This document shows, piece by piece, positions 15,001 through 57,758 of a stretch of DNA of 64,000 nt (position 1 is the first letter of the stretch; each line of letters starts with the position of its first letter). Source of the stretch: Mizuhopecten yessoensis (Eukaryota); contig NW_018405342.1 of NCBI RefSeq assembly GCF_002113885.1, positions 1,735,873-1,799,872 of the forward strand. Direction: 5' to 3'. The position numbers and the translations under genes are program-made. The notes beneath the pieces were generated by a model. The model was given only the letters and a program-made list of their open reading frames with translations, was not told where the DNA came from and searched no databases.

Positions 15001-17837
15001 GCTTATATATGTACATTTTATACCTACACCGGCATTCTGTATAAATAAGCTCTCTACATTAACTATAAGCGGTAGTGTGATAAGTGAAGTCTTTGTTCCC
15101 CGTACATACGTTTCTAAAGCGCTATAAATTACCATGTTTGCTATCGATCTAACTCTATTGAAAAAATTGGTGTGCAATGTTAGTTTGTGAAATTGCATAA
15201 GTACTCTCTAGGTTTGTTAATAGTGCTCGGATCGACGATCAAATAGTTTCAATTTGCCGGAATTTTTTTAACGAATGTGTGAAAAGCAAATGATTTGCTC
15301 ACCAGCGATTCAATAAATATATCTATTTAAAGAACGTCAATACTCTGCCATTTTTGACCGAGGAAGTATTCCCATTTCATTTAAATACTAACATAGGCTT
15401 TAAAATGTGTATTGCCTGTTCGTTATTGAAAGTATAGAAAAATCAATTCAGGGGAATGCTAGTACAGAATGAGTATCGATTCACCCAGAACCTGTCGTGA
15501 ATGCGACTGCGACAATGCATTGAGGATCGAGCCAGCGTTTTATTTCGGGGATCTCTGTCTGCATTAAAGGAATTTGACGTGTGGCAATACTGTTGATAAC
15601 TGATACTACTGTATGTGCTCAGAATTCGCGAGGACATAAACTTACGAAGACATCGACTCGTTAGGTTATATATACATTTGCACTTCATTCGTGGTGGTAG
15701 TTTTGTATGACGTATGCATCTGTAACTGTTCTCGTGATACTTCGCAATAGATATATACCGTGAGGCGGGGTTAAACGTGAGGTAGAGCTCAACGGGGGTA
15801 GACAAATATGTACAAGATTGGCAGGGAGTTACTGCCAAAACAACCCTTAAAGACAGAAACGAGAAAGAAATGTTTAAACTGATAACAGGAAAATAACAAT
15901 TAAGAGTGAAAAAAGGGAAACAAGAGAGATTTTTTTATATTAGGAAGTGTAAGAAAAAATGAGTGAACACGCAAAGGACGGATAGGGAATAGTAATACAT
16001 AAAGAAAATGAACCATAAAAAATGGGGAATAAGGGAAGATGGAAAATGGGAGCAGAATATTTCATGCACTGTTTATTAATTTGATAGCCTACATCGTAAG
16101 TAATAACCGAATAAAAAAGACACCAAACAATGGCGAATAAGTTATAGAGGAGGGAAAATTGGGGGTGGGGATGGGGGATGGGGGAGGACACAAAGGTAGA
16201 AAGAAGAACATAAATATAAAAAATAATTAAAGGAAAAGGGACGGGGACAACAGATAAAGAAATGGTAAAATGGAAGGAAAAAATATAATAATAAAGAATT
16301 TGTAAAAATGAATTTTTAATATAAGATAAAATTAATTTATCAAAATCAACCCAGACCACAACGAGAACTACGAGAACTAAGGAGACACCAAAGGGAAAGG
16401 GAAAAACATCATAAACTCGCACAGAAACCTGGAGCTATTTAAGATGTTTCGGAAGGGTAAGCGTGTTTTTTTTTTACACAGAAGGCGACACCGGACATGT
16501 TTTCTCCTGCAAAATCCAGGAAAGCGTTTAGATATAAGACAATAAACAAATTGTAAACAAAGTTTTAATCAGTGAAGATTAAGGTAAACTTTATAAACAG
16601 GAAATTTCATCCTCTGTGTATTTTTTCTAGCTTTCATCGCAGTTTTAATCAAAATCAGTCTAGTTTTTTAGAAATCAATATCTATTTATATCTATGTTTT
16701 CATGTTTTAGAATAAGAGGACTGAAGTTCCAAATCTTCGACACGATTCAAATGTAGCCTGAGAAATGATTTGCAGAATTCAAGCGTTTTAACGTACGCTG
16801 GTTTTGACAATGATGGCATTCCAATGAAATTAAGGCATTGAGAGACTTGAATAGGCTATTTCTGTTGTTCAATGAACAATGAAATATTCTTAAAGTGAAA
16901 TTCTATGTTCATCCATTTGAATTAGGCCACTATCGTTTTAAGTATGTCTTTGACCACGGTTATAATCATTGTCAAAATCCAGCATATTTAAAGCATTTAA
17001 TTTTGGCTTTGTTGAACAAAGAGGGATATATGCAAAAACCCGTTATTGTAAGGGTTATTGAAAAAAATGGGGCTCAAATACAAGTTGTGCTAGTCTACTT
17101 CAGAGTTTTTATTTCATACATCAAATGATGTATACAGCCTATAGAAAATGCAAATTGCTCACATTGTCCAAGAAGCCTTTTACATTAGATTTTGACATAA
17201 TAACTTCTATTGGAAGACAATGGTTGCCAATTGCTTTGTCACTTGGTACGACTACGTAACTGTTATTGAAGTTGAGAATATTCTTTTTACACCAATATTA
17301 CGTCAAAAAAAACCCAATACATTAAAGGGAATATACAGTCTAATGATATGTATGTTTTAGCTGTTAGCTGAAGAAGAATGAAAGACTGAAGAGCATGGAA
17401 TGGCGATATCTCCAAGCACAACAAAAACAGCATGGAACGAAAGAATACAGACCAAAGCCTGGCATAGCTGTTGTTTAAGACAAAACAAAAGTGTACTATA
17501 AATCTGGATTGTCACCATTTAAATTATATAAACCAAGGCACATATGTACATTCCAAATTATAAGAAAGGTAAAAGACGTTTTCTTTGAAATATTTGAAGG
17601 CAGAAAAATCCCCCAAGGTTCGAAGTATGGGACTAATTTCAAGTTAGCTCAGTCAGTAAGTTGACTTTACAAATTGTGAAAACCGAAGAGGGATCATTGT
17701 GACATTTGTTATCTCATACGTGACGGCAAAAGACTAAAACGGATACCAAACAGCATCAGCAATAAACTAGAACCGGAGTTGTAAAAGCATATTTAATCAG
17801 ATGTTTGTGTCAAGAACTTATATTGTAGATAAACCAT

Positions 17838-18000
17838 ATTACAAAGTCTTATCCTTAATTAAAAGGTTTTATTTCCGGTCTATTATTACAAAGGTGTAAC
17901 CCTGTTCAAGCTTTGTTTCTGGTCTATTATTACAAAGTTGTAACCCTGTTCAAGCTTTGTTTCCGGTCTATTATTACAAAGTTGAATCATATTAAAATGT
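17838..18000 (+). repeat. ~160-bp direct repeat, copy 1 (built from ~42-bp subunits)
   Basis: attacaaagtcttatccttaatt...ggtctattattacaaagttgtaaccctgttcaagctttgtttcc recurs nearly identically at 22798-22960. Confidence 0.85.
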
Positions 18001-18543: not shown

Positions 18544-21500
18544 CTATTCAAACTTGAAAGACAGTTTAGAGATAATAATAGAGGACGATTTAGAGAGCAG
18601 TACGGAGAACAGTTTAGAGAGAAGTATGTAGAACAGTTTAGAGAGAAGGATGTAGAACAGTTTAGAGAGAAGGATGTAGACCAGTTTAGAGAGAAGTATG
18701 TAGAACAGTTTAGAGAGACGGATGTAGAACAGTTTAGAGAGAAGGATGTAGAACCGTTTAGAGAGAAGGATGTAGAACAGTTTAGAGAGAAGTATGTAGA
18801 ACACTATTCAAACTTGAAAGACAGTTTAGAGATAATAATAGAGGACGATTTAGAGAGCAGTACAGAGAACAGTTTAGAGAGAAGTATGTAGAACAGTCTA
18901 GAGAGAAGTATGTAGAACAGTTTAGAGAGAAGCATGTAGAACAGTTTAGAGAGAAGTATGTAGAACGGTTTAGAGAGAAGTATTGAGAACGGTTTAGAGA
19001 GAAGGATGTAGAACAGTTTAGAGAGAAGGATGTAGAACAGTTTAGAGAGAAGTATGTAGAACGGTTTAGAGAGAAGTATTGAGAACGGTTTAGAGAGAAG
19101 GATGTAGAACAGTTTAGAGAGAAGTATGGAGTATAGAGAACGGTTTAGACATAAGCATGGAGAGCAGGTTAGAATGATGTATAGAGAACAGTTTAGAGAG
19201 AAGTATTGAGAACAGTTTAGGGATAAATATGGATAACAGTTTACAGATAAGTATAGATAACAGATTAGAGAAAGGTATAGAGAACGGTTTAGAGAGAAGT
19301 ATAGAGGACAGTTTAGAGAGAAGTATGGAGAACGGTTTAGAAAGAAGTATAGAGAACAGTTTAGAGAGAAGTATAGAGAACGGTTTAGAGAGAAGTATAG
19401 AGGACAGTTTAGAGAGAAGTATGGAGAACGGTTTAGAAAGAAGTATAGAGAACAGTTTAGAGAGAAGTATAGAGAACGGTTTAGAGAGAAGTATAGAGGA
19501 CAGTTTAGAGAGAAGTATGGAGAACGGTTTAGAAAGAAGTATAGAGAACAGTTTAGAGAGAAGTATAGAGAACGGTTTAGAGAGAAGTATAGAGGACAGT
19601 TTAGAGAGAAGTATGGAGAACGGTTTAGAAAGAAGTATAGAGAACAGTTTAGAGAGAAGTATAGAGAACGGTTTAGAGAGAAGTATAGAGGACAGTTTAG
19701 AGAGAAGTATGGAGAACGGTTTAGAAAGAAGTATAGAGAACAGTTTAGAGAGAAGTATAGAGAATGATTTAGAGAGATGAATGGGGAATAGTTTAGAGAT
19801 AAGTATAGAGAACAGTATAGAGAGATGTATGGAGAATAGTTTAGAGAGAAGTATGGAGAACAGTTCAGAGAGAAGTATAGAGAATAGTTTAGAGAGAAGT
19901 ATGGAGAACAGTGAAGAGAGAAGTATGGAGAACGGTCTAGAGAGAAGTATAGAGAATAGTTTAGAGAGAAGTATGGAGAACAGTGAAGAGAGAAGTTTAG
20001 AGAGAAGTATGGAGAACAGTCTAGAGAGAAGTATAGAGAATAGTTTAGAGAGAAGTATGGAGAACAGTTCAGAGAGAAGTATAGAGAATAGTTTAGAGAG
20101 AAGTATGGAGAACAGTTCAGAGAGAAGTATAGAGAATAGTTTAGAGAGAAGTATCGAGAACAGTTTAGAGAGAAGTATGGAGAACAGTTTAGAGAGAAGG
20201 ATGGAGAACAGTGAAGAGAGAAGTATGGAGAACAGTGAAGAGAGAAGTTTAGAGAGAAGTATGGAGAACAATTTGGAGAGAAGTATAGAGAATAGTTTAG
20301 AGAGAAGGATCGAGAACAGTTTAGAGAGAAGTATGGAGAACAGTGAAGAGAGAAGTATGGAGAACGGTCTAGAGAGAAGTATAGAGAATAGTTTAGAGAG
20401 AAGTATCGAGAACAGTTTAGAGAGAAGTATGGAGAACAGTCTAGAGAGAAGTATAGAGAATAGTTTAGAGAGAAGTATGGAGAACAGTTTAGAGCGAAGT
20501 ATCAAACAGTTCAGAGAGAAGTGTGGAGAACAGTTTAGAGAGAAGTATGTAGAACAGTCTAGAGAGAAGTATGTAGAACAGTTTAGAGAGAAGCATGTAG
20601 AACAGTTTAGAGAGAAGTATGTAGAACAGTCTAGAGAGAAGTATGTAGAACAGTTTAGAGAGAAGTATATAGAACGGTTTAGAGAGAAGTATTGAGAACG
20701 GTTTAGAGAGAAGGATGTAGAACAGTTTAGAGAGAAGGGTGTAGAAAAGTTTAGAGAGAAGGATGTAGAACAGTTTAGAGAGAAGGATGTAGACCAGTTT
20801 AGAGAGAAGTATGTAGAACAGTTTAGAGAGAAGTATGTAGAACGGTTTAGAGAGAAGTATTGAGAACGGTTTAGAGAGAAGGATGTAGAACAGTTTAGAG
20901 AGAAGGATGTAGAACAGTTTAGAGAGAAGGATGTAGAACAGTTTAGAGAGAAGTATGTAGAACAGTTTAGAGAGAAGTATGGAGAACAGTTTAGAGAGAA
21001 GTATGGAGAACAGTGAAGAGAGAAGTATGGAGAACGGTCTAGAGAGAAGTATAGAGAATAGTTTAGAGAGAAGTATCGAGAACAGTTTAGATAGCAGTAT
21101 TGAGAACAGTTTAGAGAGAAGTATCGAGAACAGTTTAGATAGCAGTATGTAGAACAGTTTAGAGAGAAGTATCGAGAACAGTTTAGATAGCAGTATTGAG
21201 AACAGTTTAGAGAGAAGTATCGAGAACAGTTCAGAGAGAAGTATGGAAAACAGTTTAGAGAGAAGTATGGAGAACAGTTTAGAGATAAGTATGGAGAACA
21301 GTCTAGAGAGAAGTATAGAGAATAGTTTAGAGAGAAGTATGGAGAACAGTTTAGAGCGAAGTATCGAGAACAGTTCAGAGAGAAGTGTGGAAAACAGTTT
21401 AGAGAGAAGTATGGAGAACAGTGAAGAGAGAAGTTTAGAGAGAAGTATGGAGAACAGTTTAGAGAGAAGTATGGAGAACAGTGAAGAGAGAAGTATGGAG

Positions 21501-22290
21501 AACAGTGAAGAGAGAAGTTTAGAGAGAAGTATAGAGTATAGTTTAGAGAGAAGTATGGAGAACAGTTTAGAGAGAAGTATAGAGAATGGTTTAGAGAGAA
21601 GTATCGAGAACAGTTTAGAGAGAAGTATAGAGAACAGTTCAGAGAGAAGTAAGGAGAACAGTTTAGAGAGAAGTATAGAGAATAGTTTAGAGAGAAGTAT
21701 GGTGAACAGTTTAGAGAGAAGTATCGAGAACAGTTTAGAGAGAAGTATGTAGAACAGTTTAGAGAGAAGTATGGAGAACAGTGAAGAGAGAGGTTTAGAG
21801 AGAAGTATGGAAAACAGTTTAGAGAGAAGTATGGAGAACAGTTTAGAGAGAAGTATAGAGAACAGTTTAGAGAGAAGTATCGATAACAGTTTAGAGAGAA
21901 GTATGGAGAACAGTGAAGAGAGAAGTTTAGAGAGAAGTATAGAGTATAGTTTAGAGAGAAGTATGGAGAACAGTTTAGAGAGAAGTATAGAGAACAGTTT
22001 AGAGAGAAGTATAGAGAATAGTTTAGACAGAAGTATAGAGAACAGTTTAGAGAGAAGTATGGAGAACAGTTTAGAGAGAAGTATCGAGAACAGTTTAGAG
22101 AGAAGTATCGAGAACAGTTTAGAGAGAAGTATAGAGAACAGTTTAGAGAGAAGTATGGAGAACAGTCTAGAGAGAAGTATAGAGAATAGTTTAGAGAGAA
22201 GTATGGAGAACAGTTCAGAGAGAAGTATAGAGAATAGTTTAGAGAGAAGTATTGAGAACAGTTTAGAGAGAAGTATGGAGAATAGTTTAT
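18544..22290. repeat. 24-bp tandem satellite (consensus gagaacagtttagagagaagtat[a/g]), roughly 150 units, with higher-order structure
   Basis: Directly visible tandem array. 8-aa periodicity in all ORF-track frames (ENSLERSM / EQFREKYV / YFSLNCSP). Confidence 0.98.
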
Positions 22291-22797
22291 AACAGTGTGT
22301 CTGATTGAATGATACTGGTCAGTCACATGACGGGGCAATAAGCCATCATGTCGATCTCACATGCTCAAGTTTCCTCGATTATATTTTCTTCGGAACCTCT
22401 CTAGAAAAAAATGGCAAGAGCCTATAATTGGCACAACTTAGTTCCGAATGACGGAAGCAGGCGACAACTACACGTATAGAGATGAGGTATAATACTTAGT
22501 AATTTAGAGAAAAAAAGATTCGTGAAGAAAAATATGAAAACAGTTTAGAAACACAGCAGAGGAAAACGAATGAAGAGTGGTATAATAAAGGAGTAATATA
22601 AAAGTTTGGAGAACAATGTAATAAATTGTATATAGAACAGTATATAGAATAGTTCGGAGAACAACATAGGAAACAAACCATTTACAATACATACAGATTA
22701 GAGTCACGATATAATTTGTAAAAGGATACGTTGATGATGAAATTCAGTAGCAACGACGTAACTGTTTGTTGTTGTTTGTGTCTTGTTTAAGACTCTG

Positions 22798-22960
22798 ATT
22801 ACAAAGTCTTATCCTTAATTAAAGGTTTTATTTTCGGTCTATTATTAAAAAGGTGTAACCCTGTTCAAGCTTTGTTTCCGGTCTATTATTACAAAGTTGT
22901 AACCCTGTTCAAGCTTTGTTTCCGGTCTATCATATTAAAAGTTGAACCATGTTGAAATGT
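22798..22960 (+). repeat. ~160-bp direct repeat, copy 2
   Basis: Near-identical to 17838-18000. Confidence 0.85.
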
Positions 22961-23865
22961 CTGTTTCCTGTCTATGTTTTACCTTATACGGTAACGCCTA
23001 TCGACGTCAATATCCTACCAATCACAGTCGTAATTTATTTACCTGTAGGTGGAGCCAATCTGCTGTCTGTCGATTCACTCAAACACATATATGACTCTAA
23101 TTAATATTCGGACCTGATGCGTGAAAAGTTCCCAATCCATACTATTCACAAAATATTATTAATTATCCCCAGTGCAAATAATTGATTAAGACACATAATG
23201 TCATCGTCTCCATGCTGATAACAAGGAAATTCGTGTTATCAGTAGCCATTAAGCTTTCGGTCGGGGTAGTAAATTGTTGCTGTGTGGCTATGGGTGTTTT
23301 ATGTGTGTACATCTTATCAAGAGGCGTTGTTAAGTACATACAGACAAATAAAATCAATAACTGTGCACCGTTACGTAATTCAGTTGCACTATTTGTTTTG
23401 GGTTGTTTATAAACTGTTATAAAATATATATCAATCATTTTAAAATGTGCGAAAACAATTATGTAATAAATATGGGCGCGGTACTGAGCAAACAAAAATT
23501 GATAAGCGAGATTTTTGAATATAATTGATTGCAAAAAAAGAGATAGCAGCTCTTAAATGACAGGAAACTTAACAATCACCACTTTATTAGTGAAACTGTT
23601 GGTTCCGGCTACGATTTATAATTCCCCACGCAATCAGTAACATACTTGCACTGATAGAATCAAGGAATATTAAGCTACTGAAAGGACTACAATCGACTAG
23701 GTATAGCGGGAATGATGTTCGTTATTTCAGAAACATTATTACATGTTTCGATATTTTTCTATTTCCAATAGATAAATCACCATCGAATCGATTTAGACAA
23801 TAATCCAGAGTTTTTTTAACATCTGTAAGAAGGGAGGTAACTCTTATATTGGCAACTGTCGTCCT

Positions 23866-24069: not shown

Positions 24070-25437
24070 AGTAGACTGAATTAAAACCAGTATATATTGT
24101 GATCATGTTCGAAGCCTGGACTAGGGTCGGATGCAATTGTACCTGGAGTTAGGGTTGGGTTGAGGGGATGGCGAGTGTACCTCCCCATGAAATTTTCAAG
24201 ATACATTGTTTCTATTGACGCGGTTGGCTGACCTTATCTGGACCTGTCATGCTTAAAGTTCTATAGTTTCAACGGGCTTCGATTTTTGTATGATTTTTTA
24301 ATACTGTGAGAATGACCGCACAGTGAACCCGTGTTTACTGAAAGATTCCAAAATAATTAGTACACTTTAAGAATTTAATGTAAAAATGGTTTAAAAATAC
24401 TGTACTTAGTGTATAATGTTACAGGCAACTCGATACGATACACAAGAAAGTATCACGACACGATACGAGTTATTGTTTTAGCCCTAATACACGTACTGTG
24501 TATTATATTGCATTTCTTTAAGTCCGAAGAAGAGGAATGTCAAACCCTAGCCCTACTTTAACTCTAAGACTCTTAACATTAGGATCGGTCATTTAAAAAA
24601 GATTTGACGATCAGATCGGTCCATTGTAAAACATTATCAAATGAAATCACTGCATGGTCCCGAATCTACAGCAGTGATATTATTTTGTTTTATTTATGCT
24701 AAATCGAGAACAGGCACTAATATTATAAACATATTGATTCATGGTTGAATCTGCAATTAATTATATAGCAAACACATGATCACTGACTTTTAACTCGAAA
24801 CCGGAAGTGCTATTTTAGAGTGTGTTTCCACATCGTTAAGGTTTCCTTCCGTATAGAAACACCCATAGAGGAATGTCGACTGACATAGATAGACAAATAT
24901 GTCATGTAAATAAATTGTACTTACCGTAGTCTTGTGTGTATGCACGCGAAACTCACAGCATCATCTAACGTTATCTGTGTTACGCAAGCAGGAAAACACG
25001 ATGGTGGAGTCAACAATAGCAATGACGTCATACGTATTGTCACGTCATGGTCCTCGCAACCATTCATACGAGATTTGATGTGTGCTAAAATTAGATTATT
25101 TGATACGTGGAATTAATTTAACATAGTGTATGGCAGGTTATGACTTCAAGCGCCTGTTATTCGCAGATAAGCAGTCAGATCAAGGCATTTTGTTAATATT
25201 GCTTAGAATTTAACAAAATTATTTCGGAACTTGTTTCCTTATTAAAAGCAAGAACATAAAATTCTTATACTGGTCGGGTTATTCGAAGCCGGGTTAGCTA
25301 ACAAACTTTGAAAAAAAAAAAAAAAAAATGTATTTCTGTTTATTTGTCTTTGAACAGTAATTTATGTAATTTTAGCTTTGAGTTTTTGTTGAGTTGTCAT
25401 GTATTAAGCTGATCAAGCTTTCAACGACTGGGACATG

Positions 25438-31560: not shown

Positions 31561-31641
31561 TAGAATGCGCCTCATACCAGGAAGTGGGTTACAAAGTATA
31601 TACTGTGTAACCCGCTTCCTGGCATGAGGCCACGCATTCTA
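31561..31641. repeat. ~80-bp palindrome/hairpin
   Basis: tagaatgcg.cctcataccaggaagtgggttaca...tgtaacccgcttcctggcatgagg..cgcattcta. Confidence 0.75.
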
Positions 31642-31840
31642 CATACCCGCTGCATGAAAAGATCATTCTATACACCAGGCCTCACTGAACACAACGGAAA
31701 GTATCGTCGAATATCCGCCAAATCTGTAGTTGATACTAAAACAAGTTAGTACCACGGAAGTTTGCTAATCCAGGATTCTTATTTAGATAAAAAACGACTT
31801 TCGTGATTAATGAAAAAATGGATTACCGAGGTGTCACTTT

Positions 31841-32050
31841 ACACAGGGACATGGGAATTTGTTACACCAGCTGTATTTATACCTATAAACTGATGTATTC
31901 AGTTGTGGTTTAGATCAACTCTCGGTTAACCTGCCCCTGTTCAGTGATATGGGGTGTTGATGTTAACGTCCATTACTTCTAGCATTACACCCTGTACATT
32001 ATCATAGGTCTCGACATACCAACTGTAACACTGATTCTCACGTCCCTGTG
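31841..32050. mobile_element. Second MITE with ACACAGGGAC termini
   Basis: acacagggacatgggaat...attctcacgtccctgtgt. Confidence 0.6.
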
Positions 32051-32220
32051 TCACTGTACTCTTGTTCCGTCAAAAGTCGTGTCACAGTTAGTAGGATCAT
32101 TTTTTATGCAAACTAGATACAGAATGTTAAGAACACAGTTACATAGAATAGTCATTCTAGTACAGTAAAGCTCCTTTAAACTGAATTGTCTGTTTTCTCA
32201 AATATTTCATTTCAAAATAT

Positions 32221-32226
32221 TTTATT
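32221..32226 (-). terminator. Candidate polyadenylation signal (AATAAA) of the eEF2-like gene
   Basis: tttatt on + strand about 430 nt downstream of the stop codon. Confidence 0.4.
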
Positions 32227-32658
32227 ACATCAATCAGATTTAATGGGAATTGGGCAACATGCAAAGCATATACAAGCCCTCTCCCTCTCTCAAATATTAT
32301 CGAATAACAAGTTTTCTGGGTTATAATGACAAGGGAAGTGTAACTTAGACGAATGGTTCAGTTTCACCTTTATCCATAAAGTGTATAACAAAAGTGTTTT
32401 TGGAATATATGGTGCCGTATAAACGAGATTCCATTGTATAAGACCCCATAATATTAGGCTACATAATCGATTACACATAATCCGGATTCTAAGTATACAA
32501 TCCAGGCAAGGGGTAGATAACCCGTGAACACACACTGACGCCCCCCAAACCAATGACGAAAAAATACACAATATGCAATATTGTATGAGAGGTTGATTGT
32601 CGTTATCAATTTTGAAAATTAATCTCCTGGTTTTCATGTCAACCCACATGAATTACAA

Positions 32659-35261
32659 TCATGCGGAACTTGCGTGTGATCCGGGAATATCAGAAGGCAG
32701 TCCCTTTCTTGCCCTCGTTTCCATGGCAACAAGTGCAGCCGCCGATTCAGGATCAAGAGGGTCACTGTTCATTAGTTCCCAATGGTCAAATGCAACTTCG
32801 ACACGCTTAGCGGAACTGCCCAGCTCACCACTGATTCCTAAACACTTTTCACCGGGAAGGAAACAGCAAACAACCGACATTGGGGTGCGTCCCAATCGTC
32901 GTTCCTCGAGTAATCTCCCCTGTCTATTCGTAAACGTCTCCCTGACAGTGCGCGTGGCCTGGTGAGAGCAGATGACCTCCACGCGGAACAGAGCCTCCAT
33001 TAGACGTGGAACAGACGCAATGATACTGCCTTGTATCGCTCGGCGGATCGCTACAACAACGTCCGAATCGTCCGCGAGCTGCCATTTTGCATAGCGCACT
33101 TCGATCCTGACACCCCGCATGCTCTCTTCACATAAAATACCTTCCCGAGCGGCCCACTGGAAACCGGATATAATGCTGTCCTTAATGTGCCCTTGGTCGC
33201 GAACCTGTTTAGAAATGTAGTACAGCAAATTCAAGCCAGAACTACCAGGACCAAAAGACCATAGTCTGTCGGCCTCACTGACATCATATCCAAAGTTTTT
33301 CGCGAGGTATTCAGCCCTTGCTTCAGGATCCTGGTCGGCTGAAATAAATCCCTCCTCAATACATTCACATAGACCATTCGGCAGAGGTTTTGTCTTGATG
33401 GAGATTTCGTTTTTCTTATTGTTCGGGCAAACTGCAGTACACAACATTTCCGGTTCCTCTGTAACGGTTTCCCGGTAAGCCACGTGCAGTTTAGTTGGTT
33501 TCAAAACCATCTGTTTTTCCAGGTAGGACTTGCACCTCAGCATGAGATGCTCGCTAGTACCAGTGAGAATGTGAAGGCCGGACGCCGCTATCGAGCATTC
33601 TAGTACCGGATGCAGCTTCATAAGTCTCTTGATTTCGATCAAAAGGTTAGGAGCATCTCCTGGATTTTTTTGATCAATGTCCAGTTGAACAACTGGGCTG
33701 ACACTATGTCTAATATCGGTAAACACAACCGGGCTGCTGTGTGACGTCACTACCCCCATCTTGGCGATCATCTGTTCAACGCCACGTATTGCACACAAGT
33801 TACCACAGATGACTTCCGGTACTGGACATATTTTGTCCCCAATTACAATTGAGGTTTCACTTATTTTGGTTTTTCGTTGAGATTCTTTTATTTCCGATCC
33901 GGACACGATCGACCCAGAAAACACACGACCGATCGCGTACAATGTATTTGTTTCTCCGATCTGGTACCATTTTGTTACGTACATGATCAATGGACCTGAA
34001 GGGTCACATGTTTTAACAGCGGAAGTGCCGACTGCGTCTGTCTTACGACTGACTAGCAGTTCGGATCTGTATCGCTGAGATGTTTGCGGTGAAGGGAGAT
34101 GAATAACGATCATTGTCAACAGGGAGTTTGATATCGGTAGCCATTGACACATCATTTCTTGAACATTTGTTCTCGTGTTTGTCTCGTTGTTGTCCAAACT
34201 CATCTGCACACCTAGATTCTCGATCAAATCAGGTAGCGCGCTTCCCTGAACATTTCCGGATGCTTCAAACAACTTAAAAATTGGGTCAAGGACAAAGAGG
34301 TTGAACGCCCGGATGTAATCTTTACTTGGTTCATTCTTCCACTTCTTTTGTGACGAGTTATAGAAGTTATCGCCCCACAGCTTACTGAGAAGCACACTAG
34401 GTGCCACTTTTAACTTCTCCGCCTGCTTCGCTGCTATTTCCCCGAGAGTAACCCCCCAGCTTTGTGATGCAGATCCAAACAACACGTTACCTTTGACCGG
34501 TGAAAATTGGACGCTTCCCATTGGTCCAGACTCGTCGCTGTACGTTGCCATGACACCCTTGGCAGCCTCTACGACACTGTGGATTGTCTGGTACAAATCT
34601 TCCTGCGAAAGTTTATGCTCCATGATAGCGCGGTCAATATTGTTTACGAATAGGACTGGTTTGACCCTCTCCCGGATGGACTGTTTAAGAACTAGTTTAG
34701 TATCCAGTGTTACACCGGAAATACAGTCAACCATTACCACGGCTCCGTCCATCATTCGTAAGGTAGTATCCACTTCCGCTGAGAAATCCACACTTCCGGG
34801 TGTGTCCAAAATGTTAATCACAAAGTCAGTATTGCCCTCCACAGCTTCCATACCTGGGAGATCGGCCGGAGCGCACGTGTGGTAAAGGCAGGTTAGATTG
34901 GCTGCCATAGGGTCCACGTCATACTTTCTACACCGGCCACTCTCTTCAGCGGTCAAATTCGGGCCGGCCTTTCTATTGAGACCATTCATTAGCGGTACCA
35001 TACCACTATCGGTCCCGCCTATTACAGCCACATTTCTTACGCTTTCCGGAATCTTCATAACTCTCCGTACTTCCTCCATTCCTACGCCCGCCATCTTGAC
35101 TGTACCTACGTGTGTAATACCAAATGTCAATATTCCGCCCTCACTCGTACTAAACGTCTGGCAAACGAGCTCGCCTTTGTTCATGTGTCGCTAGATTTTT
35201 ACCTTTACTTTTGTGCCTGTATTATATTGAGTGAACACCATCACATACCGTAGTCAGCCAT
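32659..35261 (-). CDS. Divergent elongation factor 2-like protein (eEF2 paralogue, predicted GTPase-dead, no diphthamide His). Model: exon 1 35249-35261 (MADYG), exon 2 32659-35105; alternative start ATG 35094
   Basis: 841-codon uninterrupted ORF colinear with eEF2 over domains G to V: VRNVAVI, INILDTPG-VDFSAEV, DGAVVMVDCISGV, ERVKPVL, DESGPMG, LWGDNFY, LDPIFKLF, IHLPSP, GRVFSG, SVSPVV, YRETV, WSFGP, GFQWAAREGILCEESMRGVR, PRLME, FDHWE, ETRARKGL. M31 (gtcaagATGG, 35094) aligns to the eEF2 start. In-frame phase-1 intron G|GTATGT...TAG|GT at 35106-35248. Confidence 0.93.
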
Positions 35262-35311
35262 GCGGAAACGAGCAAAGCTCGTATCGGTATACAAAGCAAC
35301 CTACTGGTCTA

Positions 35312-35319
35312 TTTATATA
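35312..35319 (-). promoter_or_regulatory. TATA box (TATATAAA) of the eEF2-like gene
   Basis: About 50 nt upstream of the proposed first ATG at 35261. Confidence 0.5.
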
Positions 35320-35501
35320 CACCTACCCGTAACTGGGACAGAGTTAATTACCGAGCATTGTGCTGACAAATATCAGCTATATCTGCCACACCTTTCAGCT
35401 GATAAAGAAGTCGATTTTACGTTAAGTCTGGCTCCTAAATAAAACTGCAAATCCCCTCATTATTCCGGTTTCTAATATAAATAATCCGGGAAATGCCATT
35501 G

Positions 35502-35930
35502 CGGACGCATATAAACAGCAGTGACGTACACGTTTCGACATTCCGGACGCATGTATAGAGCAAGGACGTACGAGGTTCGACATTCCGGGCGTAGATGTAG
35601 GGCAGAGACATACAAGTTTCGATATTCCGGACGCGTATATAGAACAAGGACGTACAAGTTTCGACATTCCGGACGCATATATAGAGCAGGGACGTTCAAG
35701 TGTGGACATTCCGGACGCATATATAGAGCAGGGACGTACAGCTTTCGACATTCCGGACGCATATATTGAGCAGGGAGTACATGTTTCGATATACCGGACG
35801 GTTATATATAGCAGGGACGTACAGGTTTCGATATTACGGACGCATATATAGAGCATGGACGTTCAAATTTCGAGATTCCGGACGCATATGTAGAGCAGAG
35901 ACGTACAAATTTCGATAGTCCGGACGCACA
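35502..35930. repeat. CpG-rich 42-bp minisatellite, ~10 units (gtttcgacattccggacgcatatatagagcagggacgtacaa)
   Basis: Visible tandem array; 14-aa periodicity in the ORF track. Confidence 0.93.
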
Positions 35931-35992
35931 TACGCATACGTTTCAATTGACTGCTCCATCCTCCTATACTTTCGTAGTGTATTTGTTTGAAA

Positions 35993-38900
35993 TGTATCAT
36001 TGCATTGACTGTATGATATGTATATAATCCCTGTGGTATTAATGACGGTACAATACGAGACCCATTCTAAAGCAATTGGGAGATACATAGTGCTTAGATA
36101 AGTTTTCACCTCAATTTGAAATTAAAAAAACCCACATACAGATTAAAGCAAAAACGTGATCGTCTAATTAAAAATTGTTTATGTGACTCAATATGAGGGA
36201 ATCCCTAGATTTAAATCCCATGTATTTTTAGTCTAATTCCCAGACCCCTGTCAACCAAAATGAATATGATGTCGGTTTAATTAACCACAGGTCCATGTGG
36301 GATATTCTGCACCAGTCTTGTTCCATCCCCGGACTAGTACCAGTCAGCCTGATTTTCCCATGTAGTCAAAAATAACTGTCTCCCTTTGAAAAAAAGATCG
36401 TCCGGAGATAGACTACGTTCCCTTCATTCTATAAAGGGGAAAAAAATAGTTATTAAAGACTTATTCCCATGCGCCTGTGTGAACTGAACCCAGTGTTGTC
36501 CCTGTTTCCGATGACTGCACAGTCAGTTCCCTTTGCAATAGAATCAGTCAAATTTCTAGCCCCTACGGCAAGCCGTTTAGACATTTAATACTATTTCATT
36601 TTAAGGTAATCGGGATATGCTTTTTTTCAAATGTGAAGAAAAGAATTAGGTTCTAGATACGCTCAGCCTCTTCTCCGAATTTTCACATTACGTCCGATTA
36701 TGATAATATTCCTGTAAAGACACGGACTTTCTCAGGGTAATGTAAATTGTATGGTGATTCTGAGAGTTTCACAAGTATTATTTGCATAACACCTCGAATT
36801 CCTTTCACGGCCTAAACTATAACTAGAGCCGCGGGTCCCACTTTTAGATTTCTAAACGCGATCAACCGACTTTGGGCCTCAGATTACCGTAGGTACTTAC
36901 ATAGAAAAGGTTGTGTTCGGTCATTTTGTGTTTTATTGGGGGATGTTTCATAAAGAATAGAATTGTATACGTTCATGACTTACGAAGAAAACTAAGTTTA
37001 GAGTTTTATAAACTGATATATCTCTCTTGTGTTCCTCTGATGGGACGGAATTTAATTAAAATAATAAACATTAAATGTTATGTTAAATCAAACTAATAAG
37101 AAAACCGTATGATCTTCTGGAGTTGTTCGGGATCATGGCTCTGGAGGAGACGATACTTGTCTTCATCATTTACACATCTCGATACTGCAATTTCATATTT
37201 TGGACTTGTTAACTGTTAATGCTACATAGGGCCTACAACTAATTTCGAGACTGTTTCTACAATAACGCACGAAGGGAGGTAGTTCAAGGTACACATTCAA
37301 CGTTTACTTCGTGGTATCCTGAACACGTTTTGATCGGCAGCTCCAGCCTCTTGTACTTTTGTCATGCATTTTTGTTTATAAATGTATAATTGCATTGACT
37401 ATATAATATGTACAGGACAGTCCGATGTTCATGTCCCTGTGGTAATGACGTACACTACGAGATCCGCCTGATTCCGTCAAGCTGAAACCTTCTAAAGCAA
37501 TTTGAAGATACATAGTGCTTAGATAAGTTTTCGTCTTAATTTTGAAATATAAAACACATACAGCTTAGAGCAAAAACGTGATCGTCTAATTAAAAATTGT
37601 TAATGTGTCTAAATATCAGGGAATCCCTAGATGTGAATCCCATGTATTTTTAGTCTAATTCCCAGACCCCTGTCACCCAAAATGAATATGATGTCGTAAC
37701 CCCGTGTGCATGTGAGATATTCTGCACCAGTCTTGTTCCTAAGTCGATACATGATCGACTCCAAATCACTATGCTCAGTTTGATCCCCAGACTCCTGTGT
37801 TTTTATATATCGTTATGAAAGTACAAGTCAGCCTGATTTTCCCCATGTAGTCCAAAATAACGATCTCCTCTTAAAAAAAGATGGTGCGGAGACAGACCCT
37901 ATGGCAATTCAATTAATACTTATTCATCTTAAGGTAATCGGGATATGCTCTTTTTCAAATGTAAAGAAAAGAATTAATTTCTAGTTTTATAGATAGCTTA
38001 GCCCCAAAGCTCCCTTCTCCGATTTTCACACTCTGAATTCAACAGGTATGTTCACATTACGTCCGATTGTGATAATATATCTGTAAAGATACGGACTTTC
38101 GCAGGGTAATATAAATTGTATGGTGATTGAATGAGAGTTTCACAAGTATTACATAACACCTGGAATTCCTTTCACGTCCTAAACTATAACTAGAGCCGCG
38201 GGTACCACTTTTAGATTACTAAGCGCGATCAACCGACTTCGGACCTCAGATTACCGTACGTACTTACATAGAAAAGGTTGTGTTCGGCCATTTTGCGTTG
38301 TATCGGGGGATGTTTCATAAAGAAAAGAATTCTATACGTTTATGACTTACGGAGAAAAACCAAGTTCAGAGTTGTATTAACTGATTTATATCTCTCTCAT
38401 GTTCCCATCGACGCCAAAGCAGGGACAGAATTTAATTTAAGAAAAATAAACATTATGTTAAATCCAATTTATACGAAAACCGTGAGATCTTCTCGAGTTG
38501 TTGGGGATCATGGCTCTGGTGGAAATGATATTTTTCTTCGTCATTTACACATCTCGATTCAGCAATTTCATATTTTGGACTTGTAAACGGTTAACGCTTC
38601 AAGTGTTTTATACTGCACGTCTTTCATAGAGCCTACAACTAGTCATTTGATTCAGAAATGAACTTTGAACTGTTGTGTCACCCAATGTCGTCCCTGACTT
38701 AAATTTAGTATCATAACATTGCCGATGGTAGAAATTAAATTAAATTCAATGGTATGCATATGCATGAGCTAACGGTTACGTGTCATCGGGGAAGATGTCA
38801 GGTGACGTAGGGTTTATGTAGTGTGTGCACGCGCTAGTGCGCTCTTTCGAGTTCGTTGCTCAACACAGTACTACGTACGGCTTAATTACGAAACTTTCGA

Positions 38901-52239: not shown

Positions 52240-52867
52240 GGGGGCCGTGGTGGCTGAATGGTTGGGGGCCGTGGTGGCTGAATGGTTGGGGTCCGTGGTG
52301 GCCGAATAGTTGGGGGCCGTGGTGGCCGAATGGTTGGGGGCCGTGGTGGCCGANCTGAATGGTTGGGGGTCGTGGTGGCTGAATGGTTGGGGGTCGTGGT
52401 GGCTGAATGGTTGGGGGTCGTGGTGGCTGAATGGTTGGGGGTCGTGGTGGCTGAATGGTTGGGGGTCGTGGTGGCTGAATGGTTGGGGGTCGTGGTGGCT
52501 GAATGGTTGGGGGTCGTGGTGGCTGAATGGTTGGGGGTCGTGGTGGCTGAATGGTTGGGGGTCGTGGTGGCTGAATGGTTGGGGGTCGTGGTGGCTGAAT
52601 GGTTGGGGGTCGTGGTGGCTGAATGGTTGGGGGTCGTGGTGGCTGAATGGTTGGGGGTCGTGGTGGCTGAATGGTTGGGGGTCGTGGTGGCTGAATGGTT
52701 GGGGGTCGTGGTGACTGAATGGTTGGGGGTCGTGGTGGCTGAATGGTTGGGGGTCGTGGTGGCTGAATGGTTGGGGGCCGTGGTGGCTGAATGGTTGGGG
52801 ACCGTGGTGGCTGAATGGTTGGGGCCGTGGTGGCTGAATGGTTGGGGGCCGTGGTGGCTGAATGGTT
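52240..52867 (+). repeat. G-rich 24-bp minisatellite (ggggg[c/t]cgtggtggctgaatggtt), ~26 units, derived from a SINE head
   Basis: Visible array containing an N at 52354. The last unit runs directly into the SINE body. Confidence 0.97.
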
Positions 52868-53708: not shown

Positions 53709-56700
53709 CTAACGCCGTACATCCATAGACACGAGAGCTATATCTTCCTTAACCTTCTTCATAGAGTTACTGCCCTTGTGTTCCGGTGCATTGTCAAGCT
53801 TCATTAGTGTGAAGAGGGCGCTGACCATGCTTGCGATACCCGAGAAGACGAAAAAGAAGATGACCACTGCGTTGTAGCAGAGAATTTCATTATCTGGGGT
53901 CTGAACTAACTCCCGTGCTCTGGTCCAGGCCCAGGAGATACTGAGGTACTCTCCCATTAGTACCACCATCACCAAAAACGTGACGCACCCTTCAAAACAG
54001 ACAAATGAAGAAATTACATACATACTTGTAATACAACTTATAACATTACATATAAAAAAAACACCTGATGATGACGTTAAATTAAGTTACTTTTTATCAA
54101 CGTTATGTCATACACAACATGTTGTTAAATCACGCGGGTTGATTTATGACGTTACTGGTTTGAATATGTGATGAAAAACACATCTTATGACGTCATTAGT
54201 TTTTATCCGTTATTATAGACAAATCGTATGACGTCGTTTACAATATATTTGTACCCTGATATACATTTTATATTTTCACAGCACTTATAACATTATGTGT
54301 TTGCACCCGTGACAACTCTTCCAAATATGCTCGTACCCGTGATATATAAAGCAAATAATATGACGTCATTTGATTATATCCGTGACAAAACTCACGTGCA
54401 TTGCTTACCCTCGACATATAACATAACACTTATGACGTCATTGGTTTGTACCCTTTACGACACCCACGAGGGTTGCTCGTACCCTCGACATATAACACAG
54501 TACGTGTGTGGTGTCTGTACCCGTTAAATTACGCTTACCATTGAAAATAGAGAACACGCCAGTCACGTAGTTGAAGAAGGTGTTTCGTTTCCATAGATAA
54601 ACAACAGTAGACAGTAAGGCACATATTGTCAGGATAATACCGAAAACTCCAGCAAAGCGAATAAACATCAGGAATCCTGGAAAAGATAAAATAAAACGTC
54701 CATTACTATTGTTTTAGCATCCTATCCAGTTAGCTTGTACAATAAACAAAATATGGCGCAGTTTTTTATCACATACTCAGCGCCATTTTGTACGTTCGAT
54801 TGTTTTTGCAATGACCATTTTTATTTCCTGAACAATGTCTGTAGGCAAGTAACTTGCAAAATTCCATTTGAAAAATGGACGCGTTATAACCAAAACATCA
54901 ATGGTACATTATTCCGACAAATGTACATACTATCTATTTAGATATGAATTTATAATTGATAACAGTTGTATATTTTGAAGGGCAAAGTTTAATTAAGAAA
55001 CTTTTATTACAAACACAGACGCTTTACTTGATAAAGAAGCTTGTGTCACATGCTTGTGTGCAAGACACCATTTAAAAATAACATCTCCGTTTATGACAGA
55101 CGTAAATCTTACACACACATATACACAAAAATGTATATAGAGAATCTGTCATAAGTTTCTCTTCATATTAAATTTATGATACACGTTTAGGATTTTTCAT
55201 GTTTGCGAGCCTCTGGCGAGCAAATATGAAAAATCCAAAACGAGTATCATAAATCTTATATGAAGGGAAACGAATGACAGATTTGTTTTAACATATAATA
55301 CAAAATAAACTGTATAATTGTGATCTGAAACGAATATTTTGCACTTAGCCGCCTCTGAAACGATGAAAATTGCGTCCGCTTCACAATGATGTGACGTCAT
55401 ATTGATTTTTCCTATTCGATTGTGACGTCATTTCCGTAAACACGTTTCATAAACATAGTTTATGTAATGGCTTTATGACACTGCATAACACGGTATTCAT
55501 ATGATACATAAGGTATATAGTATGCCACATTCTATCAGAGACTGCTTGATCCATAGACAAAAATGCATCAAAGCATAAAATTCGATATTTTTGCCATAAG
55601 GACCTTTCTCCGTGGCGCGCCTTATATAGAATGATGTGCTCTGATAATGTGACGTCATCATTTTATTCACAACAGCCTCGCATTAATATAAATTGTTGAT
55701 ATGTAATAAAATCAATACAACATGTATGTGTATATGACGCCACAAATACGCTTGTTTACTCCGCTAAATGTACACATCGACCCTTAAAATCCTGAGTGTT
55801 ATAACCTTCCGCATAGTATACTCATGTCATCTGCAAAGTCTGTCTGTTTGGATTTGGGATTCTATCGACAAGCTAAGGTCCTGTGACGACGGTGTGCATA
55901 GAGAATCGCAGCCGGTCAATGACCAGTTTTAAACGTCATTTTGATAAAATTAAATAGCAAAAACATAGCAGAATGATACTCAAACCGGTCAATACGCTAA
56001 CCGGAAGTGACGATGATGACGCCATCAAAACGGAAATTAAGGATGAGAGAGACAAAAATGAGTGTAAAAGGCTGCTACTTTAGGCCCCTTGTAGGTTTTT
56101 TTCTTTGTTAAGAGAAATATTTAATTGTCCAAAATAAAGCCGATGCTGCGTTTCTGTCCTTTAGATGGTTGCAGTGTTTTTCTATTTTCTACTCTTCTAC
56201 GTTAATATGTCTCGTAACACCTCTCATATCAATATATAAACGTTTATTTGCAACAAACAATATTAAGACAATTTTCATCGTCCAAGACATATGACATCAC
56301 CAAAAAGACGCATACATGTACCCTCACAATTAAGAGATACTTCATGTCATCACTACATAGACACGTGTCCTCTCTATTAATACATATTTTATCACTATTA
56401 ATACACATAAAATTTCTTGATGGATATCTGTCGCCATTCTCCATTCTCTCTAGGCGCATATCATCACTATCTTTAAACCTGTCATCATTATATAGACACA
56501 GGTCATCTCTCTCTTTATACCTGTCATCTCTAGATTGACAACTGTCATCTCTTGATTGACACCTGTCATCTCTTGATTGACACCTGTCATCTCTCTATGG
56601 ACACCAGTCATCTCTCTCTAGACACCAGTCATCTCTCTATTTACACCTGTCATCTCTCCCTAGACACCTGTCATCTATACCTAGACACCTGTCATCTCTC

Positions 56701-57758
56701 TCGAGACACCTGTCATCACTCTCTAGACACCAATCGTCTCTCTCATTACGAAAATCATCATTCTGAAGACACCAGCCATCTCTCTAGACACCAGCCATCT
56801 CTCTAGACACCTGTCATCTCTCTAGACACAAGTCATCTCTCTCTTTACACCTGTCATCTTTCTAGACAACTGTCATCTCTCTAGACACCAATCATATCTC
56901 TCTTGACACAAATAATCTTTCTCAAGACACCAGTCATCTCTCTAGACACATGTCATCTCTCTAGACACATGTCATATCTCTCTTGTAACGTGTCATCACT
57001 CTCACGACAACTTGTTATCACTCACTTGACGCCTGTCATATCTCTCTACACACCAGTCATCTCTCTTTAGACACCAGTTATCTCTCTCTTTATATCTGTC
57101 ACCTCTTGCTTGACACCTGTCATTTCTCTCTTGTAACGTGTCATCTCTCTACACACCAGTCATCTCTCTCTAGACACCTGTCATCTCTCTCCTTATACCT
57201 GTAACCTCTTGCTTGACACCTGTCATCTCTCTCTTGACACCTGTCATCTATCTACACACCAGTCATCTCCATAAACACCAGTCATCCCTCTTTAGACACA
57301 TGTCATCTCTATCTTGACACCATTCTCTACCGTCCTGACCCTGCCTGTTGAGGGACGTTAAGCCACAAACAACCAAACAAACATCACTCTCCAGACACCT
57401 GTCATCTCTCTATTGACACCTGTAGTCTTTCTTTAGACAAAGGCACCAGTCATCTCTCTCTTGACACTGTCATCACTCTATTAACACTAGTTTGACACCT
57501 GTCATCATTTAACGGATATATGCGACGCTGAAAAATCAAAAACAAAAAAAGCAAACAGAGCTTACCAGAACTTTCCCCGGTGGTCAGTTGACAAACTCCA
57601 TCCGTACACAGGACGCGATCCCAAAGACCGTAATTCTGGAGAGTGTCATCATGACCGCTTGACCACCAGATTTTCAGGAAGATCCCAAGGATGATGAATA
57701 GGACGGCAAGGAATTCCACTGAGAGCAATACCTTGTGTTTGATATAGTCGAGTTTCAT
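53709..57758 (-). CDS. Claudin/PMP22/EMP-superfamily four-pass membrane protein B (~203 aa); exons 57566-57758, 54539-54676, 53709-53989
   Basis: TM1 followed by WW...NYGLW-x4-C-x4-C. Canonical GT/AG phase-1 junctions in frame (GESS|GFLMFIRFAG...SIFN|GCVTFLVMVVL...DVRR*); four hydrophobic segments. Confidence 0.87.
56470..57505. repeat. Degenerate 21-23-bp minisatellite (gacacc[t/a]gtcatctctctcta) in intron 1 of claudin-like B, interrupted by a SINE tail at ~57335-57382
   Basis: Roughly 40 visible units; embedded ccctgcctgttgagggacgttaagccacaaacaaccaaac. Confidence 0.9.

Follow-up and report, generated by a model that had tools for sequence, protein, structure and literature searches.

How much of an elongation factor can be dismantled while the remainder is still held in place by selection, and what might that remainder do? 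The question is raised by a gene on the minus strand of a 64,000-nucleotide stretch of the genome of the scallop Mizuhopecten yessoensis (contig NW_018405342.1, positions 1,735,873 to 1,799,872; hereafter the window, within which coordinates are given). The gene encodes a paralogue of eukaryotic elongation factor 2 (eEF2). Few eukaryotic proteins are as conserved as eEF2, and the residues lost in the paralogue are close to universal; the paralogue has shed them under a constraint about that of an ordinary housekeeping gene, and so offers a natural experiment on the eEF2 body without its GTPase engine. An earlier inspection of the letters alone (the sequence-only reading) had picked out an unbroken, eEF2-colinear open reading frame (ORF) of about 810 codons with degraded GTPase motifs, and had proposed phylogeny, the ratio of nonsynonymous to synonymous substitution rates (dN/dS, or omega) and RNA-seq as checks. 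The results bear on each of these points.

The longest uninterrupted ORF on the minus strand (32659-35184) spans 841 codons, and its GC content of 44-46% stands out from the approximately 35% of the surrounding sequence. The real coding sequence (CDS) is 32659-35094, encoding a five-domain protein of 811 amino acids that is colinear with eEF2, in agreement with the frame described beforehand. The start is placed at 35094 because the annotated orthologues are 811 amino acids long, because RNA contigs stop near 35175, because the ATG at 35094 sits in a conserved Kozak context and because the 30 in-frame codons upstream are conserved as nucleotides only and contain frame-breaking indels. A coding N-terminal extension of 30 codons, as implied by the 841-codon frame, was ruled out by the non-triplet indels of the four-species alignment. 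The orthologous CDSs of Ylistrum and Argopecten are exactly 2436 nt each and likewise have no introns.

The best match among solved structures is Drosophila eEF2 (4v6w, E = 6e-177), which is colinear from residue 5 to the end, and eEF2 structures (fly, mammals, yeast) score 593 bits compared with approximately 332 for Snu114 and 214 for EFL1. Identity to ordinary eEF2 is 36-39%. A search of 5.8 billion proteins returned only three further close clusters. The closest orthologue cluster is that of Ylistrum balloti XP_060083455.1 (80% identity), Argopecten irradians XP_069133299.1 is 78% identical, and a fourth species, represented by two Logan contigs of 2.75-2.86 kb, is 66% identical; all three orthologues carry the same degraded motifs. 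NCBI automatic annotation names the orthologues "(eukaryotic) translation elongation factor 2-like". When 1.84 billion representatives clustered at 50% identity were scanned without an index and with no length window, no intermediates between the scallop cluster (78%) and eEF2 (38%) were found, and as sampled the family has no intermediate, fragment or fusion relatives.

Phylogenetic analysis of 52 sequences (LG+C20 PMSF, quick search), with five Snu114-like rows chosen by length and N-terminal offset as the outgroup, grouped the four scallop proteins in a fully supported clade on a stem of 2.19 substitutions per site. This clade falls inside the eEF2 group, apart from the Snu114-like rows, at an open fork beside the canonical animal eEF2s. 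Branches within it (0.15-0.34) match or exceed those between animal phyla for canonical eEF2 (0.05-0.2), and the paralogue is therefore still evolving several times faster than its parent. A GPMG insert in the G' domain is present in all four scallop proteins and in 115 of the 116 best canonical hits (the named ones are all animals); it is not found in one plant (sunflower) sequence and occurs in only three of 149 divergent representatives. As this insert is common to the scallop paralogue and canonical animal eEF2s, it supports an animal-type eEF2 as the parent. Both the metazoan parentage and the assignment to eEF2 rather than to EFTUD2/Snu114 or EFL1 had been proposed by the sequence-only reading, and the second of these is upheld by the bit scores, by the position of the clade and by the lack of an N-terminal extension or of large inserts; the EFTUD2 N-terminal domain gave no Pfam match in the paralogue.

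The degraded motifs were compared in an alignment with canonical animal eEF2s, and conservation was scored over 59 other eEF2-like proteins (63 rows with the scallops). The features of the coding region, all on the minus strand, are as follows.

32659-35094, minus strand: eEF2-derived CDS of the paralogue, without introns, of 811 codons and a stop; the protein begins with MAGVG and ends in SSA.
34996-35019, minus strand: degraded G1/P-loop, GGTDSGMV as against AHVDHGKS in eEF2 (codons 26-33).
34897-34965, minus strand: former switch I/effector region, unrecognisable, with a 7-residue deletion and the G2 Thr gone.
34792-34806, minus strand: degraded G3, DTPGS (DTPGT in Argopecten) as against DSPGH (codons 97-101), with the catalytic His lost and the Asp and Gly kept.
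34633-34644, minus strand: altered G4, NNID as against NKMD (codons 151-154), with the Lys lost and Asn151 and Asp154 kept.
34456-34476, minus strand: G5 region, GSASQSW as against GSGLHGW in eEF2, with Ser208 kept.
33877-33882, minus strand: site of an 11-residue deletion in domain II, where the RIMGPNYxPGK hairpin of eEF2 is gone (from the alignment; common to the four species).
33055-33096, minus strand: rewritten domain IV tip, YAKWQLADDSDVV, in place of the H-x-D-x-x-H-R-G-G-G-Q diphthamide loop (from the alignment).

The losses at G1, G3 and G4 lie exactly where the sequence-only reading had placed them, and the degraded versions are conserved in the orthologues. In the P-loop of all four scallop species the Lys is replaced by Met or Ile and the Ser/Thr by Val, Leu or Met; the Lys (K32) is 93% conserved in the 59 other eEF2-like proteins and altered in each of the four scallops. 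The NKxD Lys (K152) is 100% conserved outside the scallops and Asn in all four of them. Switch I, which had also been reported as unrecognisable, is seven residues shorter and can no longer be identified in the alignment. The segment of eEF2 that aligns to this deleted stretch, which we take to be the target region of eEF2 kinase, is absent from the scallop paralogue. The intact G1-G4 set of a functional translocase (GxxxxGK[ST], switch I Thr, DxxGH, NKxD) is lacking in all four species, as is the HxDxxHRG diphthamide loop with its target His. In contrast, two features expected of a pseudoGTPase are found at the level of sequence and fold: the G-domain fold is kept, and the degeneration of the motifs is itself conserved.

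Alterations extend beyond the G domain. Three-residue deletions occur in domain III and in domain V, and the domain III motif GELHLE has become SEHLML. In domain IV the diphthamide loop HADAIHRGGGQ is replaced by AKWQLADDSDV and is four residues shorter; D668, D670, H673, R674 and Q678 are altered in all four scallops, and the newly acquired W, L and D-S-D do not vary between the four. The C-terminal YLDKL is replaced by HxSSA, with a PSDIPGSH-SSA tail that is conserved among scallops. The losses are targeted, because 67 of the 92 positions that are at least 90% conserved across the 59 eEF2-like proteins are kept by all four scallops, whereas 17 of the 92 are altered in all four, including the P-loop Lys, the NKxD Lys and five diphthamide-loop residues with the His among them. 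By sequence the paralogue is a member of the eEF2 subfamily, one that lacks both the G motifs and the diphthamide loop. Pfam detects GTP_EFTU (85 bits) and EFG_IV, with EFG_C and domain 2 below the cut-off and no match to EFG_III in the paralogue.

An AlphaFold2 (AF2) model built from the 63-row alignment without templates forms all five domains (mean predicted local distance difference test, pLDDT, 86; predicted template modelling score 0.86). The G domain is mostly at pLDDT 83-95, residues 41-110 (switch I and the following segment) are at 66-83, the former switch I region itself is lowest in the G domain (66-73), and part of G' is also lower. The sequence-only reading had stated that the structural motifs of the domains are retained; this holds for the fold, but only 23-50% of the eEF2-invariant columns survive in each domain. 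Shifts in net charge are modest: positive charge is lost from G', and the C-terminal segment has turned acidic. In a Foldseek search with the model, eEF2 ranks first by E-value and the best global superposition is on Snu114. A Snu114-like conformation (template modelling (TM) score 0.86-0.89, versus 0.61-0.63 to ribosome-bound eEF2) was considered and dropped, as a control fold of canonical starfish eEF2, made from the same alignment, gave the same result (0.91-0.93 to Snu114 versus 0.65-0.69 to ribosome-bound eEF2), so that the shape is a property of the method and not of the paralogue. That template-free AlphaFold2 yields the compact arrangement of spliceosomal Snu114 for the paralogue and for canonical eEF2 alike calls for caution when function is read from such models.

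The paralogue is under strong purifying selection over its whole body. Pairwise Nei-Gojobori (NG86) estimates give dN of 0.11-0.24, dS from 0.96 to saturation and omega of 0.08-0.11, with bootstrap upper bounds no higher than 0.144. A codon model (GY+F3X4) gives omega of 0.117, and fixing omega at 1 lowers the log likelihood from -8270.2 to -8844.3 (likelihood-ratio statistic 1148, 1 degree of freedom). Omega is 0.05-0.17 in each of G, G', II, III, IV, V and the C-terminal segment. Lineage-specific single-nucleotide codon changes (nonsynonymous/synonymous) number 20/67 in the window species, 22/83 in Ylistrum and 24/119 in Argopecten, a ratio of 0.20-0.30 in each lineage. The purifying selection that had been deduced from the length of the open frame is thus borne out, with omega at about 0.1, far from the value near 1 of a pseudogene, and neutrality rejected.

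The gene is also transcribed. Raw reads of two runs on record as RNA-seq, from unstranded libraries and with approximately 19% of each run read, cover the paralogue at a summed depth of about 17-69x per bin over 31600-35145, falling to approximately 0.3 past 35146 and to essentially zero from about 35150 to 37500. The edge of the signal lies approximately 80 nt upstream of the ATG, the longest contig stops at 35175, and the sharpness of this edge excludes DNA contamination. No splice joints were found in the reads or contigs over the whole CDS, and no frameshifts or stops in the reads. The strand of the transcript is taken from that of the gene. Contigs of 18 runs from six studies contain 85-96% of the stretch examined at this locus, and those of four runs almost none; one of the near-empty runs shares its study with two of the listed runs that contain 85-87%, and this pattern suggests that expression is sample-specific.

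How does the paralogue compare with known members and offshoots of the family? It resembles canonical eEF2 in five-domain order, length, the GPMG insert in G' and an eEF2-like AF2 fold, but lacks G1, G2, the G3 His and the G4 Lys, has a shortened switch I and an acidic loop in place of the diphthamide loop, carries deletions in each of domains II to V, ends in a new C-terminus, and is intronless and confined to scallops. The nearest described analogue is aEF-2p, a second EF-2-family protein that occurs beside bona fide EF-2 in Asgard archaea and Korarchaeota (Narrowe et al. 2018, PMC6143161). That study defines the diphthamide loop, describes the domain IV loops as important for translocation and judges aEF-2p, which is without the diphthamide loop and its His, to be unable to translocate. 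However, aEF-2p keeps G1-G5 and is thought still to be a GTPase (PMC6143161), whereas the scallop protein has lost its G motifs; conversely, aEF-2p lacks loop 2 (SPHKHN), which the scallop paralogue keeps in part (CPNNKKN). The two are of independent origin, one having arisen in archaea and the other in an animal family.

Snu114/EFTUD2 is an eEF2-fold protein that works outside translocation and is the second-best solved relative (about 332 bits). In contrast to the scallop protein, which starts at about residue 5 of eEF2, it has an N-terminal extension of approximately 75-115 residues as judged from alignment offsets, and according to a published study it stays GTP-bound, a feature that the scallop paralogue appears to lack. 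EFL1/Ria1, a GTPase of 60S maturation, is likewise an eEF2-like, ribosome-binding paralogue, but the match to its solved chain (5anb, 214 bits) is broken into four stretches over 1120 residues, whereas the scallop protein has 811 residues and differs by deletions only. Both show that the fold can be redeployed, yet both keep nucleotide-binding motifs and carry extra segments. PseudoGTPases such as the p190RhoGAP domains and AAGAB also combine degenerate motifs on a G-domain fold with selection for a non-catalytic role (PMC5593906, PMC12490416), but these are small-GTPase-like domains and not of the EF-G/eEF2 class. In the literature searched we found no published animal translational GTPase of the EF-G/eEF2 class that had become a pseudoGTPase, and no paper on a scallop or other animal eEF2 paralogue or pseudo-GTPase; the run accession of the fourth species likewise turned up in none. 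The gene appears to be a lineage-specific, eEF2-derived pseudo-GTPase in an animal, so far present in databases under an automatic name only.

What might such a protein do? The reading that we favour, at a probability of roughly 0.6, is that it is an intronless duplicate of eEF2, restricted to scallops (Pectinidae), which has turned non-catalytic; as our best guess at the mechanism, it would be a passive occupant or regulator by means of the eEF2 shape that it retains. eEF2 would have been duplicated in the scallop lineage, most simply as a retrogene, and a burst of change after duplication would have stripped the G domain of the P-loop Lys and Ser, switch I, the catalytic His and the NKxD Lys, domain III of its coupling motif and domain IV of its diphthamide loop. 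What remains has since been held by strong purifying selection as a folded protein of five domains, and it is transcribed from a conserved promoter of its own. With its eEF2 shape it could take up an eEF2 binding site, whether the factor-binding site of the ribosome or a site on an eEF2 partner, without a nucleotide cycle, and so passively block or regulate translation in certain tissues or at certain stages. The parts of this reading differ in strength. Because the machinery for GTP hydrolysis and translocation has been removed, we have good confidence that the paralogue is not a translocase but a pseudo-GTPase in the sequence sense, which would act without catalysis; that GTPase activity is lost we infer. 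Docking at an eEF2 site as a passive occupant or regulator is a tentative proposal of low confidence, made plausible by the presence of canonical eEF2 on inactive ribosomes with SERBP1, as in deposited structures (see also PMC6226290). The roles put forward by the sequence-only reading, namely ribosome hibernation or storage, translational repression or a decoy, would be guesses. The most specific version, in which a retrocopy of eEF2 has become a dedicated nucleotide-independent 'dummy translocase' that idles ribosomes in the factor site or blocks elongation, for example in gametes or under stress, is speculative and, in our estimation, unlikely.

Several observations weigh against the favoured reading. 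Residues of the guanine and phosphate pocket (Asn151, Asp154, Asp97, Gly100 and Ser208) all stay invariant, N151 and D154 in 63 of 63 alignment rows, and given this retention some residual binding of guanine nucleotide may be possible. Some of the strongest alterations fall on the surfaces with which eEF2 faces the ribosome: the tip of domain IV has become acidic (DDSD), which argues somewhat against eEF2-like insertion in the A site, G' has lost its positive charge, and domain V is the most diverged domain, with 29% identity to eEF2. Together these changes in domain IV, domain V and G' argue against docking identical to that of eEF2. As to origin, when starfish eEF2 was used as the query the hits came from echinoderms, cnidarians, sponges and arthropods and included no named mollusc eEF2, so that derivation from the scallop's own eEF2 is to be read as probable at most. 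Retroposition may be the simplest origin because the CDS is intronless (the canonical eEF2 gene of one starfish occupies 15.4 kb for 840 codons); this single character is the evidence for it, and hallmarks such as a poly(A) remnant or target-site duplications are unlikely to have survived at the age of the paralogue.

Polymorphism also counts against it. The CDS variants in the two RNA-seq samples number 27, of which 18 are nonsynonymous and nine synonymous (pN/pS about 0.6), and this ratio differs from that of divergence (McDonald-Kreitman-type p = 0.004-0.005). The alternative allele matches an orthologue in seven of the 18, and eight strike residues that are conserved in all orthologues; derived alleles occur at high frequency at conserved positions (D472G, for example), and M442 and N383 are derived residues specific to the reference. 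Such an excess (p about 0.004), together with the eight variants at conserved residues, is what would be expected of a decaying or merely transcribed retrocopy with a fortuitous frame, or of a gene whose constraint is being lost in the window species. Relaxed constraint in this species is not borne out by its lineage-specific substitutions, whose nonsynonymous/synonymous ratio is as low as in the other lineages. Decay is also at odds with a 2.4-kb frame that has stayed open in four species separated by a dS of about 1 or more, with the rejection of neutrality (omega = 0.117), with the absence of stops or frameshifts in the RNA reads and with a conserved promoter, and we regard it as largely refuted and the least probable of the explanations considered. 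A high genetic load of mildly deleterious variation is common in bivalves, and our reading of the excess is that it reflects segregating variation of this kind rather than decay of the gene.

The most serious competitor is a non-ribosomal one, in which the eEF2 fold, like that of Snu114 in the spliceosome, would serve as a structural subunit or adaptor of another complex, recognised through the acidic domain IV tip and the new C-terminus. The most rewritten parts of the protein are elements that contact the ribosome, the replacement residues are conserved among scallops, domain V and G' have diverged strongly, and Snu114 and EFL1 provide precedent for eEF2-fold proteins in roles other than translocation. 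On the other hand, the paralogue showed neither a partner nor a fused domain nor a localisation signal, constraint is equal over the five-domain body rather than focused on a single surface, and the Snu114-like AF2 shape is no evidence, as the canonical eEF2 control folds likewise. Taken by itself this explanation is rather unlikely, yet it is nearly as likely as passive occupation of an eEF2 site. That the protein is a decoy which soaks up regulators or toxins directed at eEF2 (eEF2 kinase, diphthamide enzymes or the diphthamide-specific ADP-ribosylating toxins of marine bacteria), thereby shielding eEF2 itself, is improbable. It would account for an eEF2-shaped protein devoid of the inactivation sites Thr56 and diphthamide, and for the faster evolution (terminal branches of 0.15-0.34 within one bivalve family compared with 0.05-0.2 across phyla). 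But a decoy should keep the elements by which it is recognised, and switch I with the kinase target region, the diphthamide loop and its stabilising Arg are gone; moreover, the catalytic residues that face the sarcin-ricin loop (SRL) and the GELHLE motif of domain III are also rewritten, and an overall omega of 0.1 carries no signature of an arms race. It is highly improbable that the paralogue is a still-active GTPase or translocase with unorthodox motifs, employed as a specialised elongation factor. The invariance of Asn151/Asp154, Ser208 and the Asp97/Gly100 of G3 and the retention of the overall fold are compatible with this, but against it stand the joint loss of Lys and Ser/Thr from the P-loop, of the Thr of G2, of the catalytic His and of the Lys of NKxD, and the disappearance of the domain IV loops on which translocation depends.

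The interest of the gene lies in the number of near-universal residues lost under strong constraint, and is limited by its narrow taxonomic range. If the protein binds ribosomes, it would be a factor of a new kind that silences translation, and a ready-made probe of the factor site that is unable to hydrolyse GTP; as a 'dummy translocase' it would be the first animal translational GTPase converted to a pseudo-GTPase regulator of the ribosome. If it does not bind ribosomes, it would join Snu114 as a second case in which the eEF2 fold has been recruited elsewhere, in this instance a recent and traceable one. The annotation "translation elongation factor 2-like" could in either event mislead expression studies in scallops, where eEF2 may be used as a reference gene.

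The transcript and its flanks comprise the following parts.

35095-35184, minus strand: in-frame upstream extension of the 841-codon ORF, non-coding 5' untranslated region (UTR) according to the alignment and RNA depth.
35095-35418, minus strand: conserved 5'UTR and promoter, with blastn colinearity to 35418 in Ylistrum and to 35397 in Argopecten.
31677-32658, minus strand: 3'UTR, minimum extent, from a single 3391-nt contig (31677-35067) with depth like that of the CDS.

Approximately 325 nt 5' of the ATG are conserved across the three genomic loci. Within them, a 16-nt block of the 5'UTR (35119-35134) is invariant in the four-species alignment and a TATA-like box (35310-35319) is conserved in three genomes. 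The sequence-only reading had extended the gene to 35261, but this boundary belongs to a separate ORF in another frame, the six-codon upstream ORF MADYGM (35244-35261), which shares part of its sequence with a conserved GGTATGTGATGG motif of the promoter/5' region; with almost no RNA depth at this place, it probably lies outside the main transcript. The 3'UTR is not conserved between species by blastn. It is at least 1 kb long and contains an AATAAA at 32221-32226, but RNA coverage runs on beyond this to the edge of the mapped stretch (31600), and one further RNA contig would extend the 3' end to about 29473.

The three genomic loci (window, Ylistrum and Argopecten) are colinear around the paralogue; they are positional orthologues, and the gene is older than the split of these lineages. 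A conserved element at 24935-25105, approximately 7.5 kb 3' of the paralogue, is present in the three scallop genomes, where it corresponds to 17676-17887 of the Ylistrum locus and 17024-17168 of the Argopecten locus and lies about 4.6-7.5 kb downstream of the gene. It is non-coding, contains one TGACGTCA palindrome with a CACGTCA near-repeat close by, and adjoins a minus-strand site resembling a splice donor; it probably comprises the promoter and exon 1 of the next gene. A second conserved element (23143-23401) is common to the window and Ylistrum. The Ylistrum locus also encodes an apparently intronless Sec1-family ORF of 634 amino acids (2457-4361), 5.6 kb upstream of the orthologue, for which no counterpart was found in the 64-kb window or the Argopecten locus.

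An Rfam scan of the entire window gave no match, and several tandem arrays are present. Directly upstream of the conserved promoter of the paralogue is a minisatellite of approximately ten copies of a 42-bp unit (35497-35932), which looks lineage-specific because homology to Ylistrum and Argopecten ends before it, at 35418. A much larger array of about 155 copies of a 24-bp unit, purine-rich on the plus strand (18561-22289), accounts for an extreme GC/AT skew and for a spurious 'ORF' of 1074 amino acids at 19114-22338. Two arrays of one 44-bp repeat (17868-17984 and 22827-22975) flank it, as if it had been carried by a mobile element. Two further minisatellites consist of 26 copies of a 24-bp unit at 96% identity (52240-52867) and 42 copies of a 21-bp unit (56461-57321).

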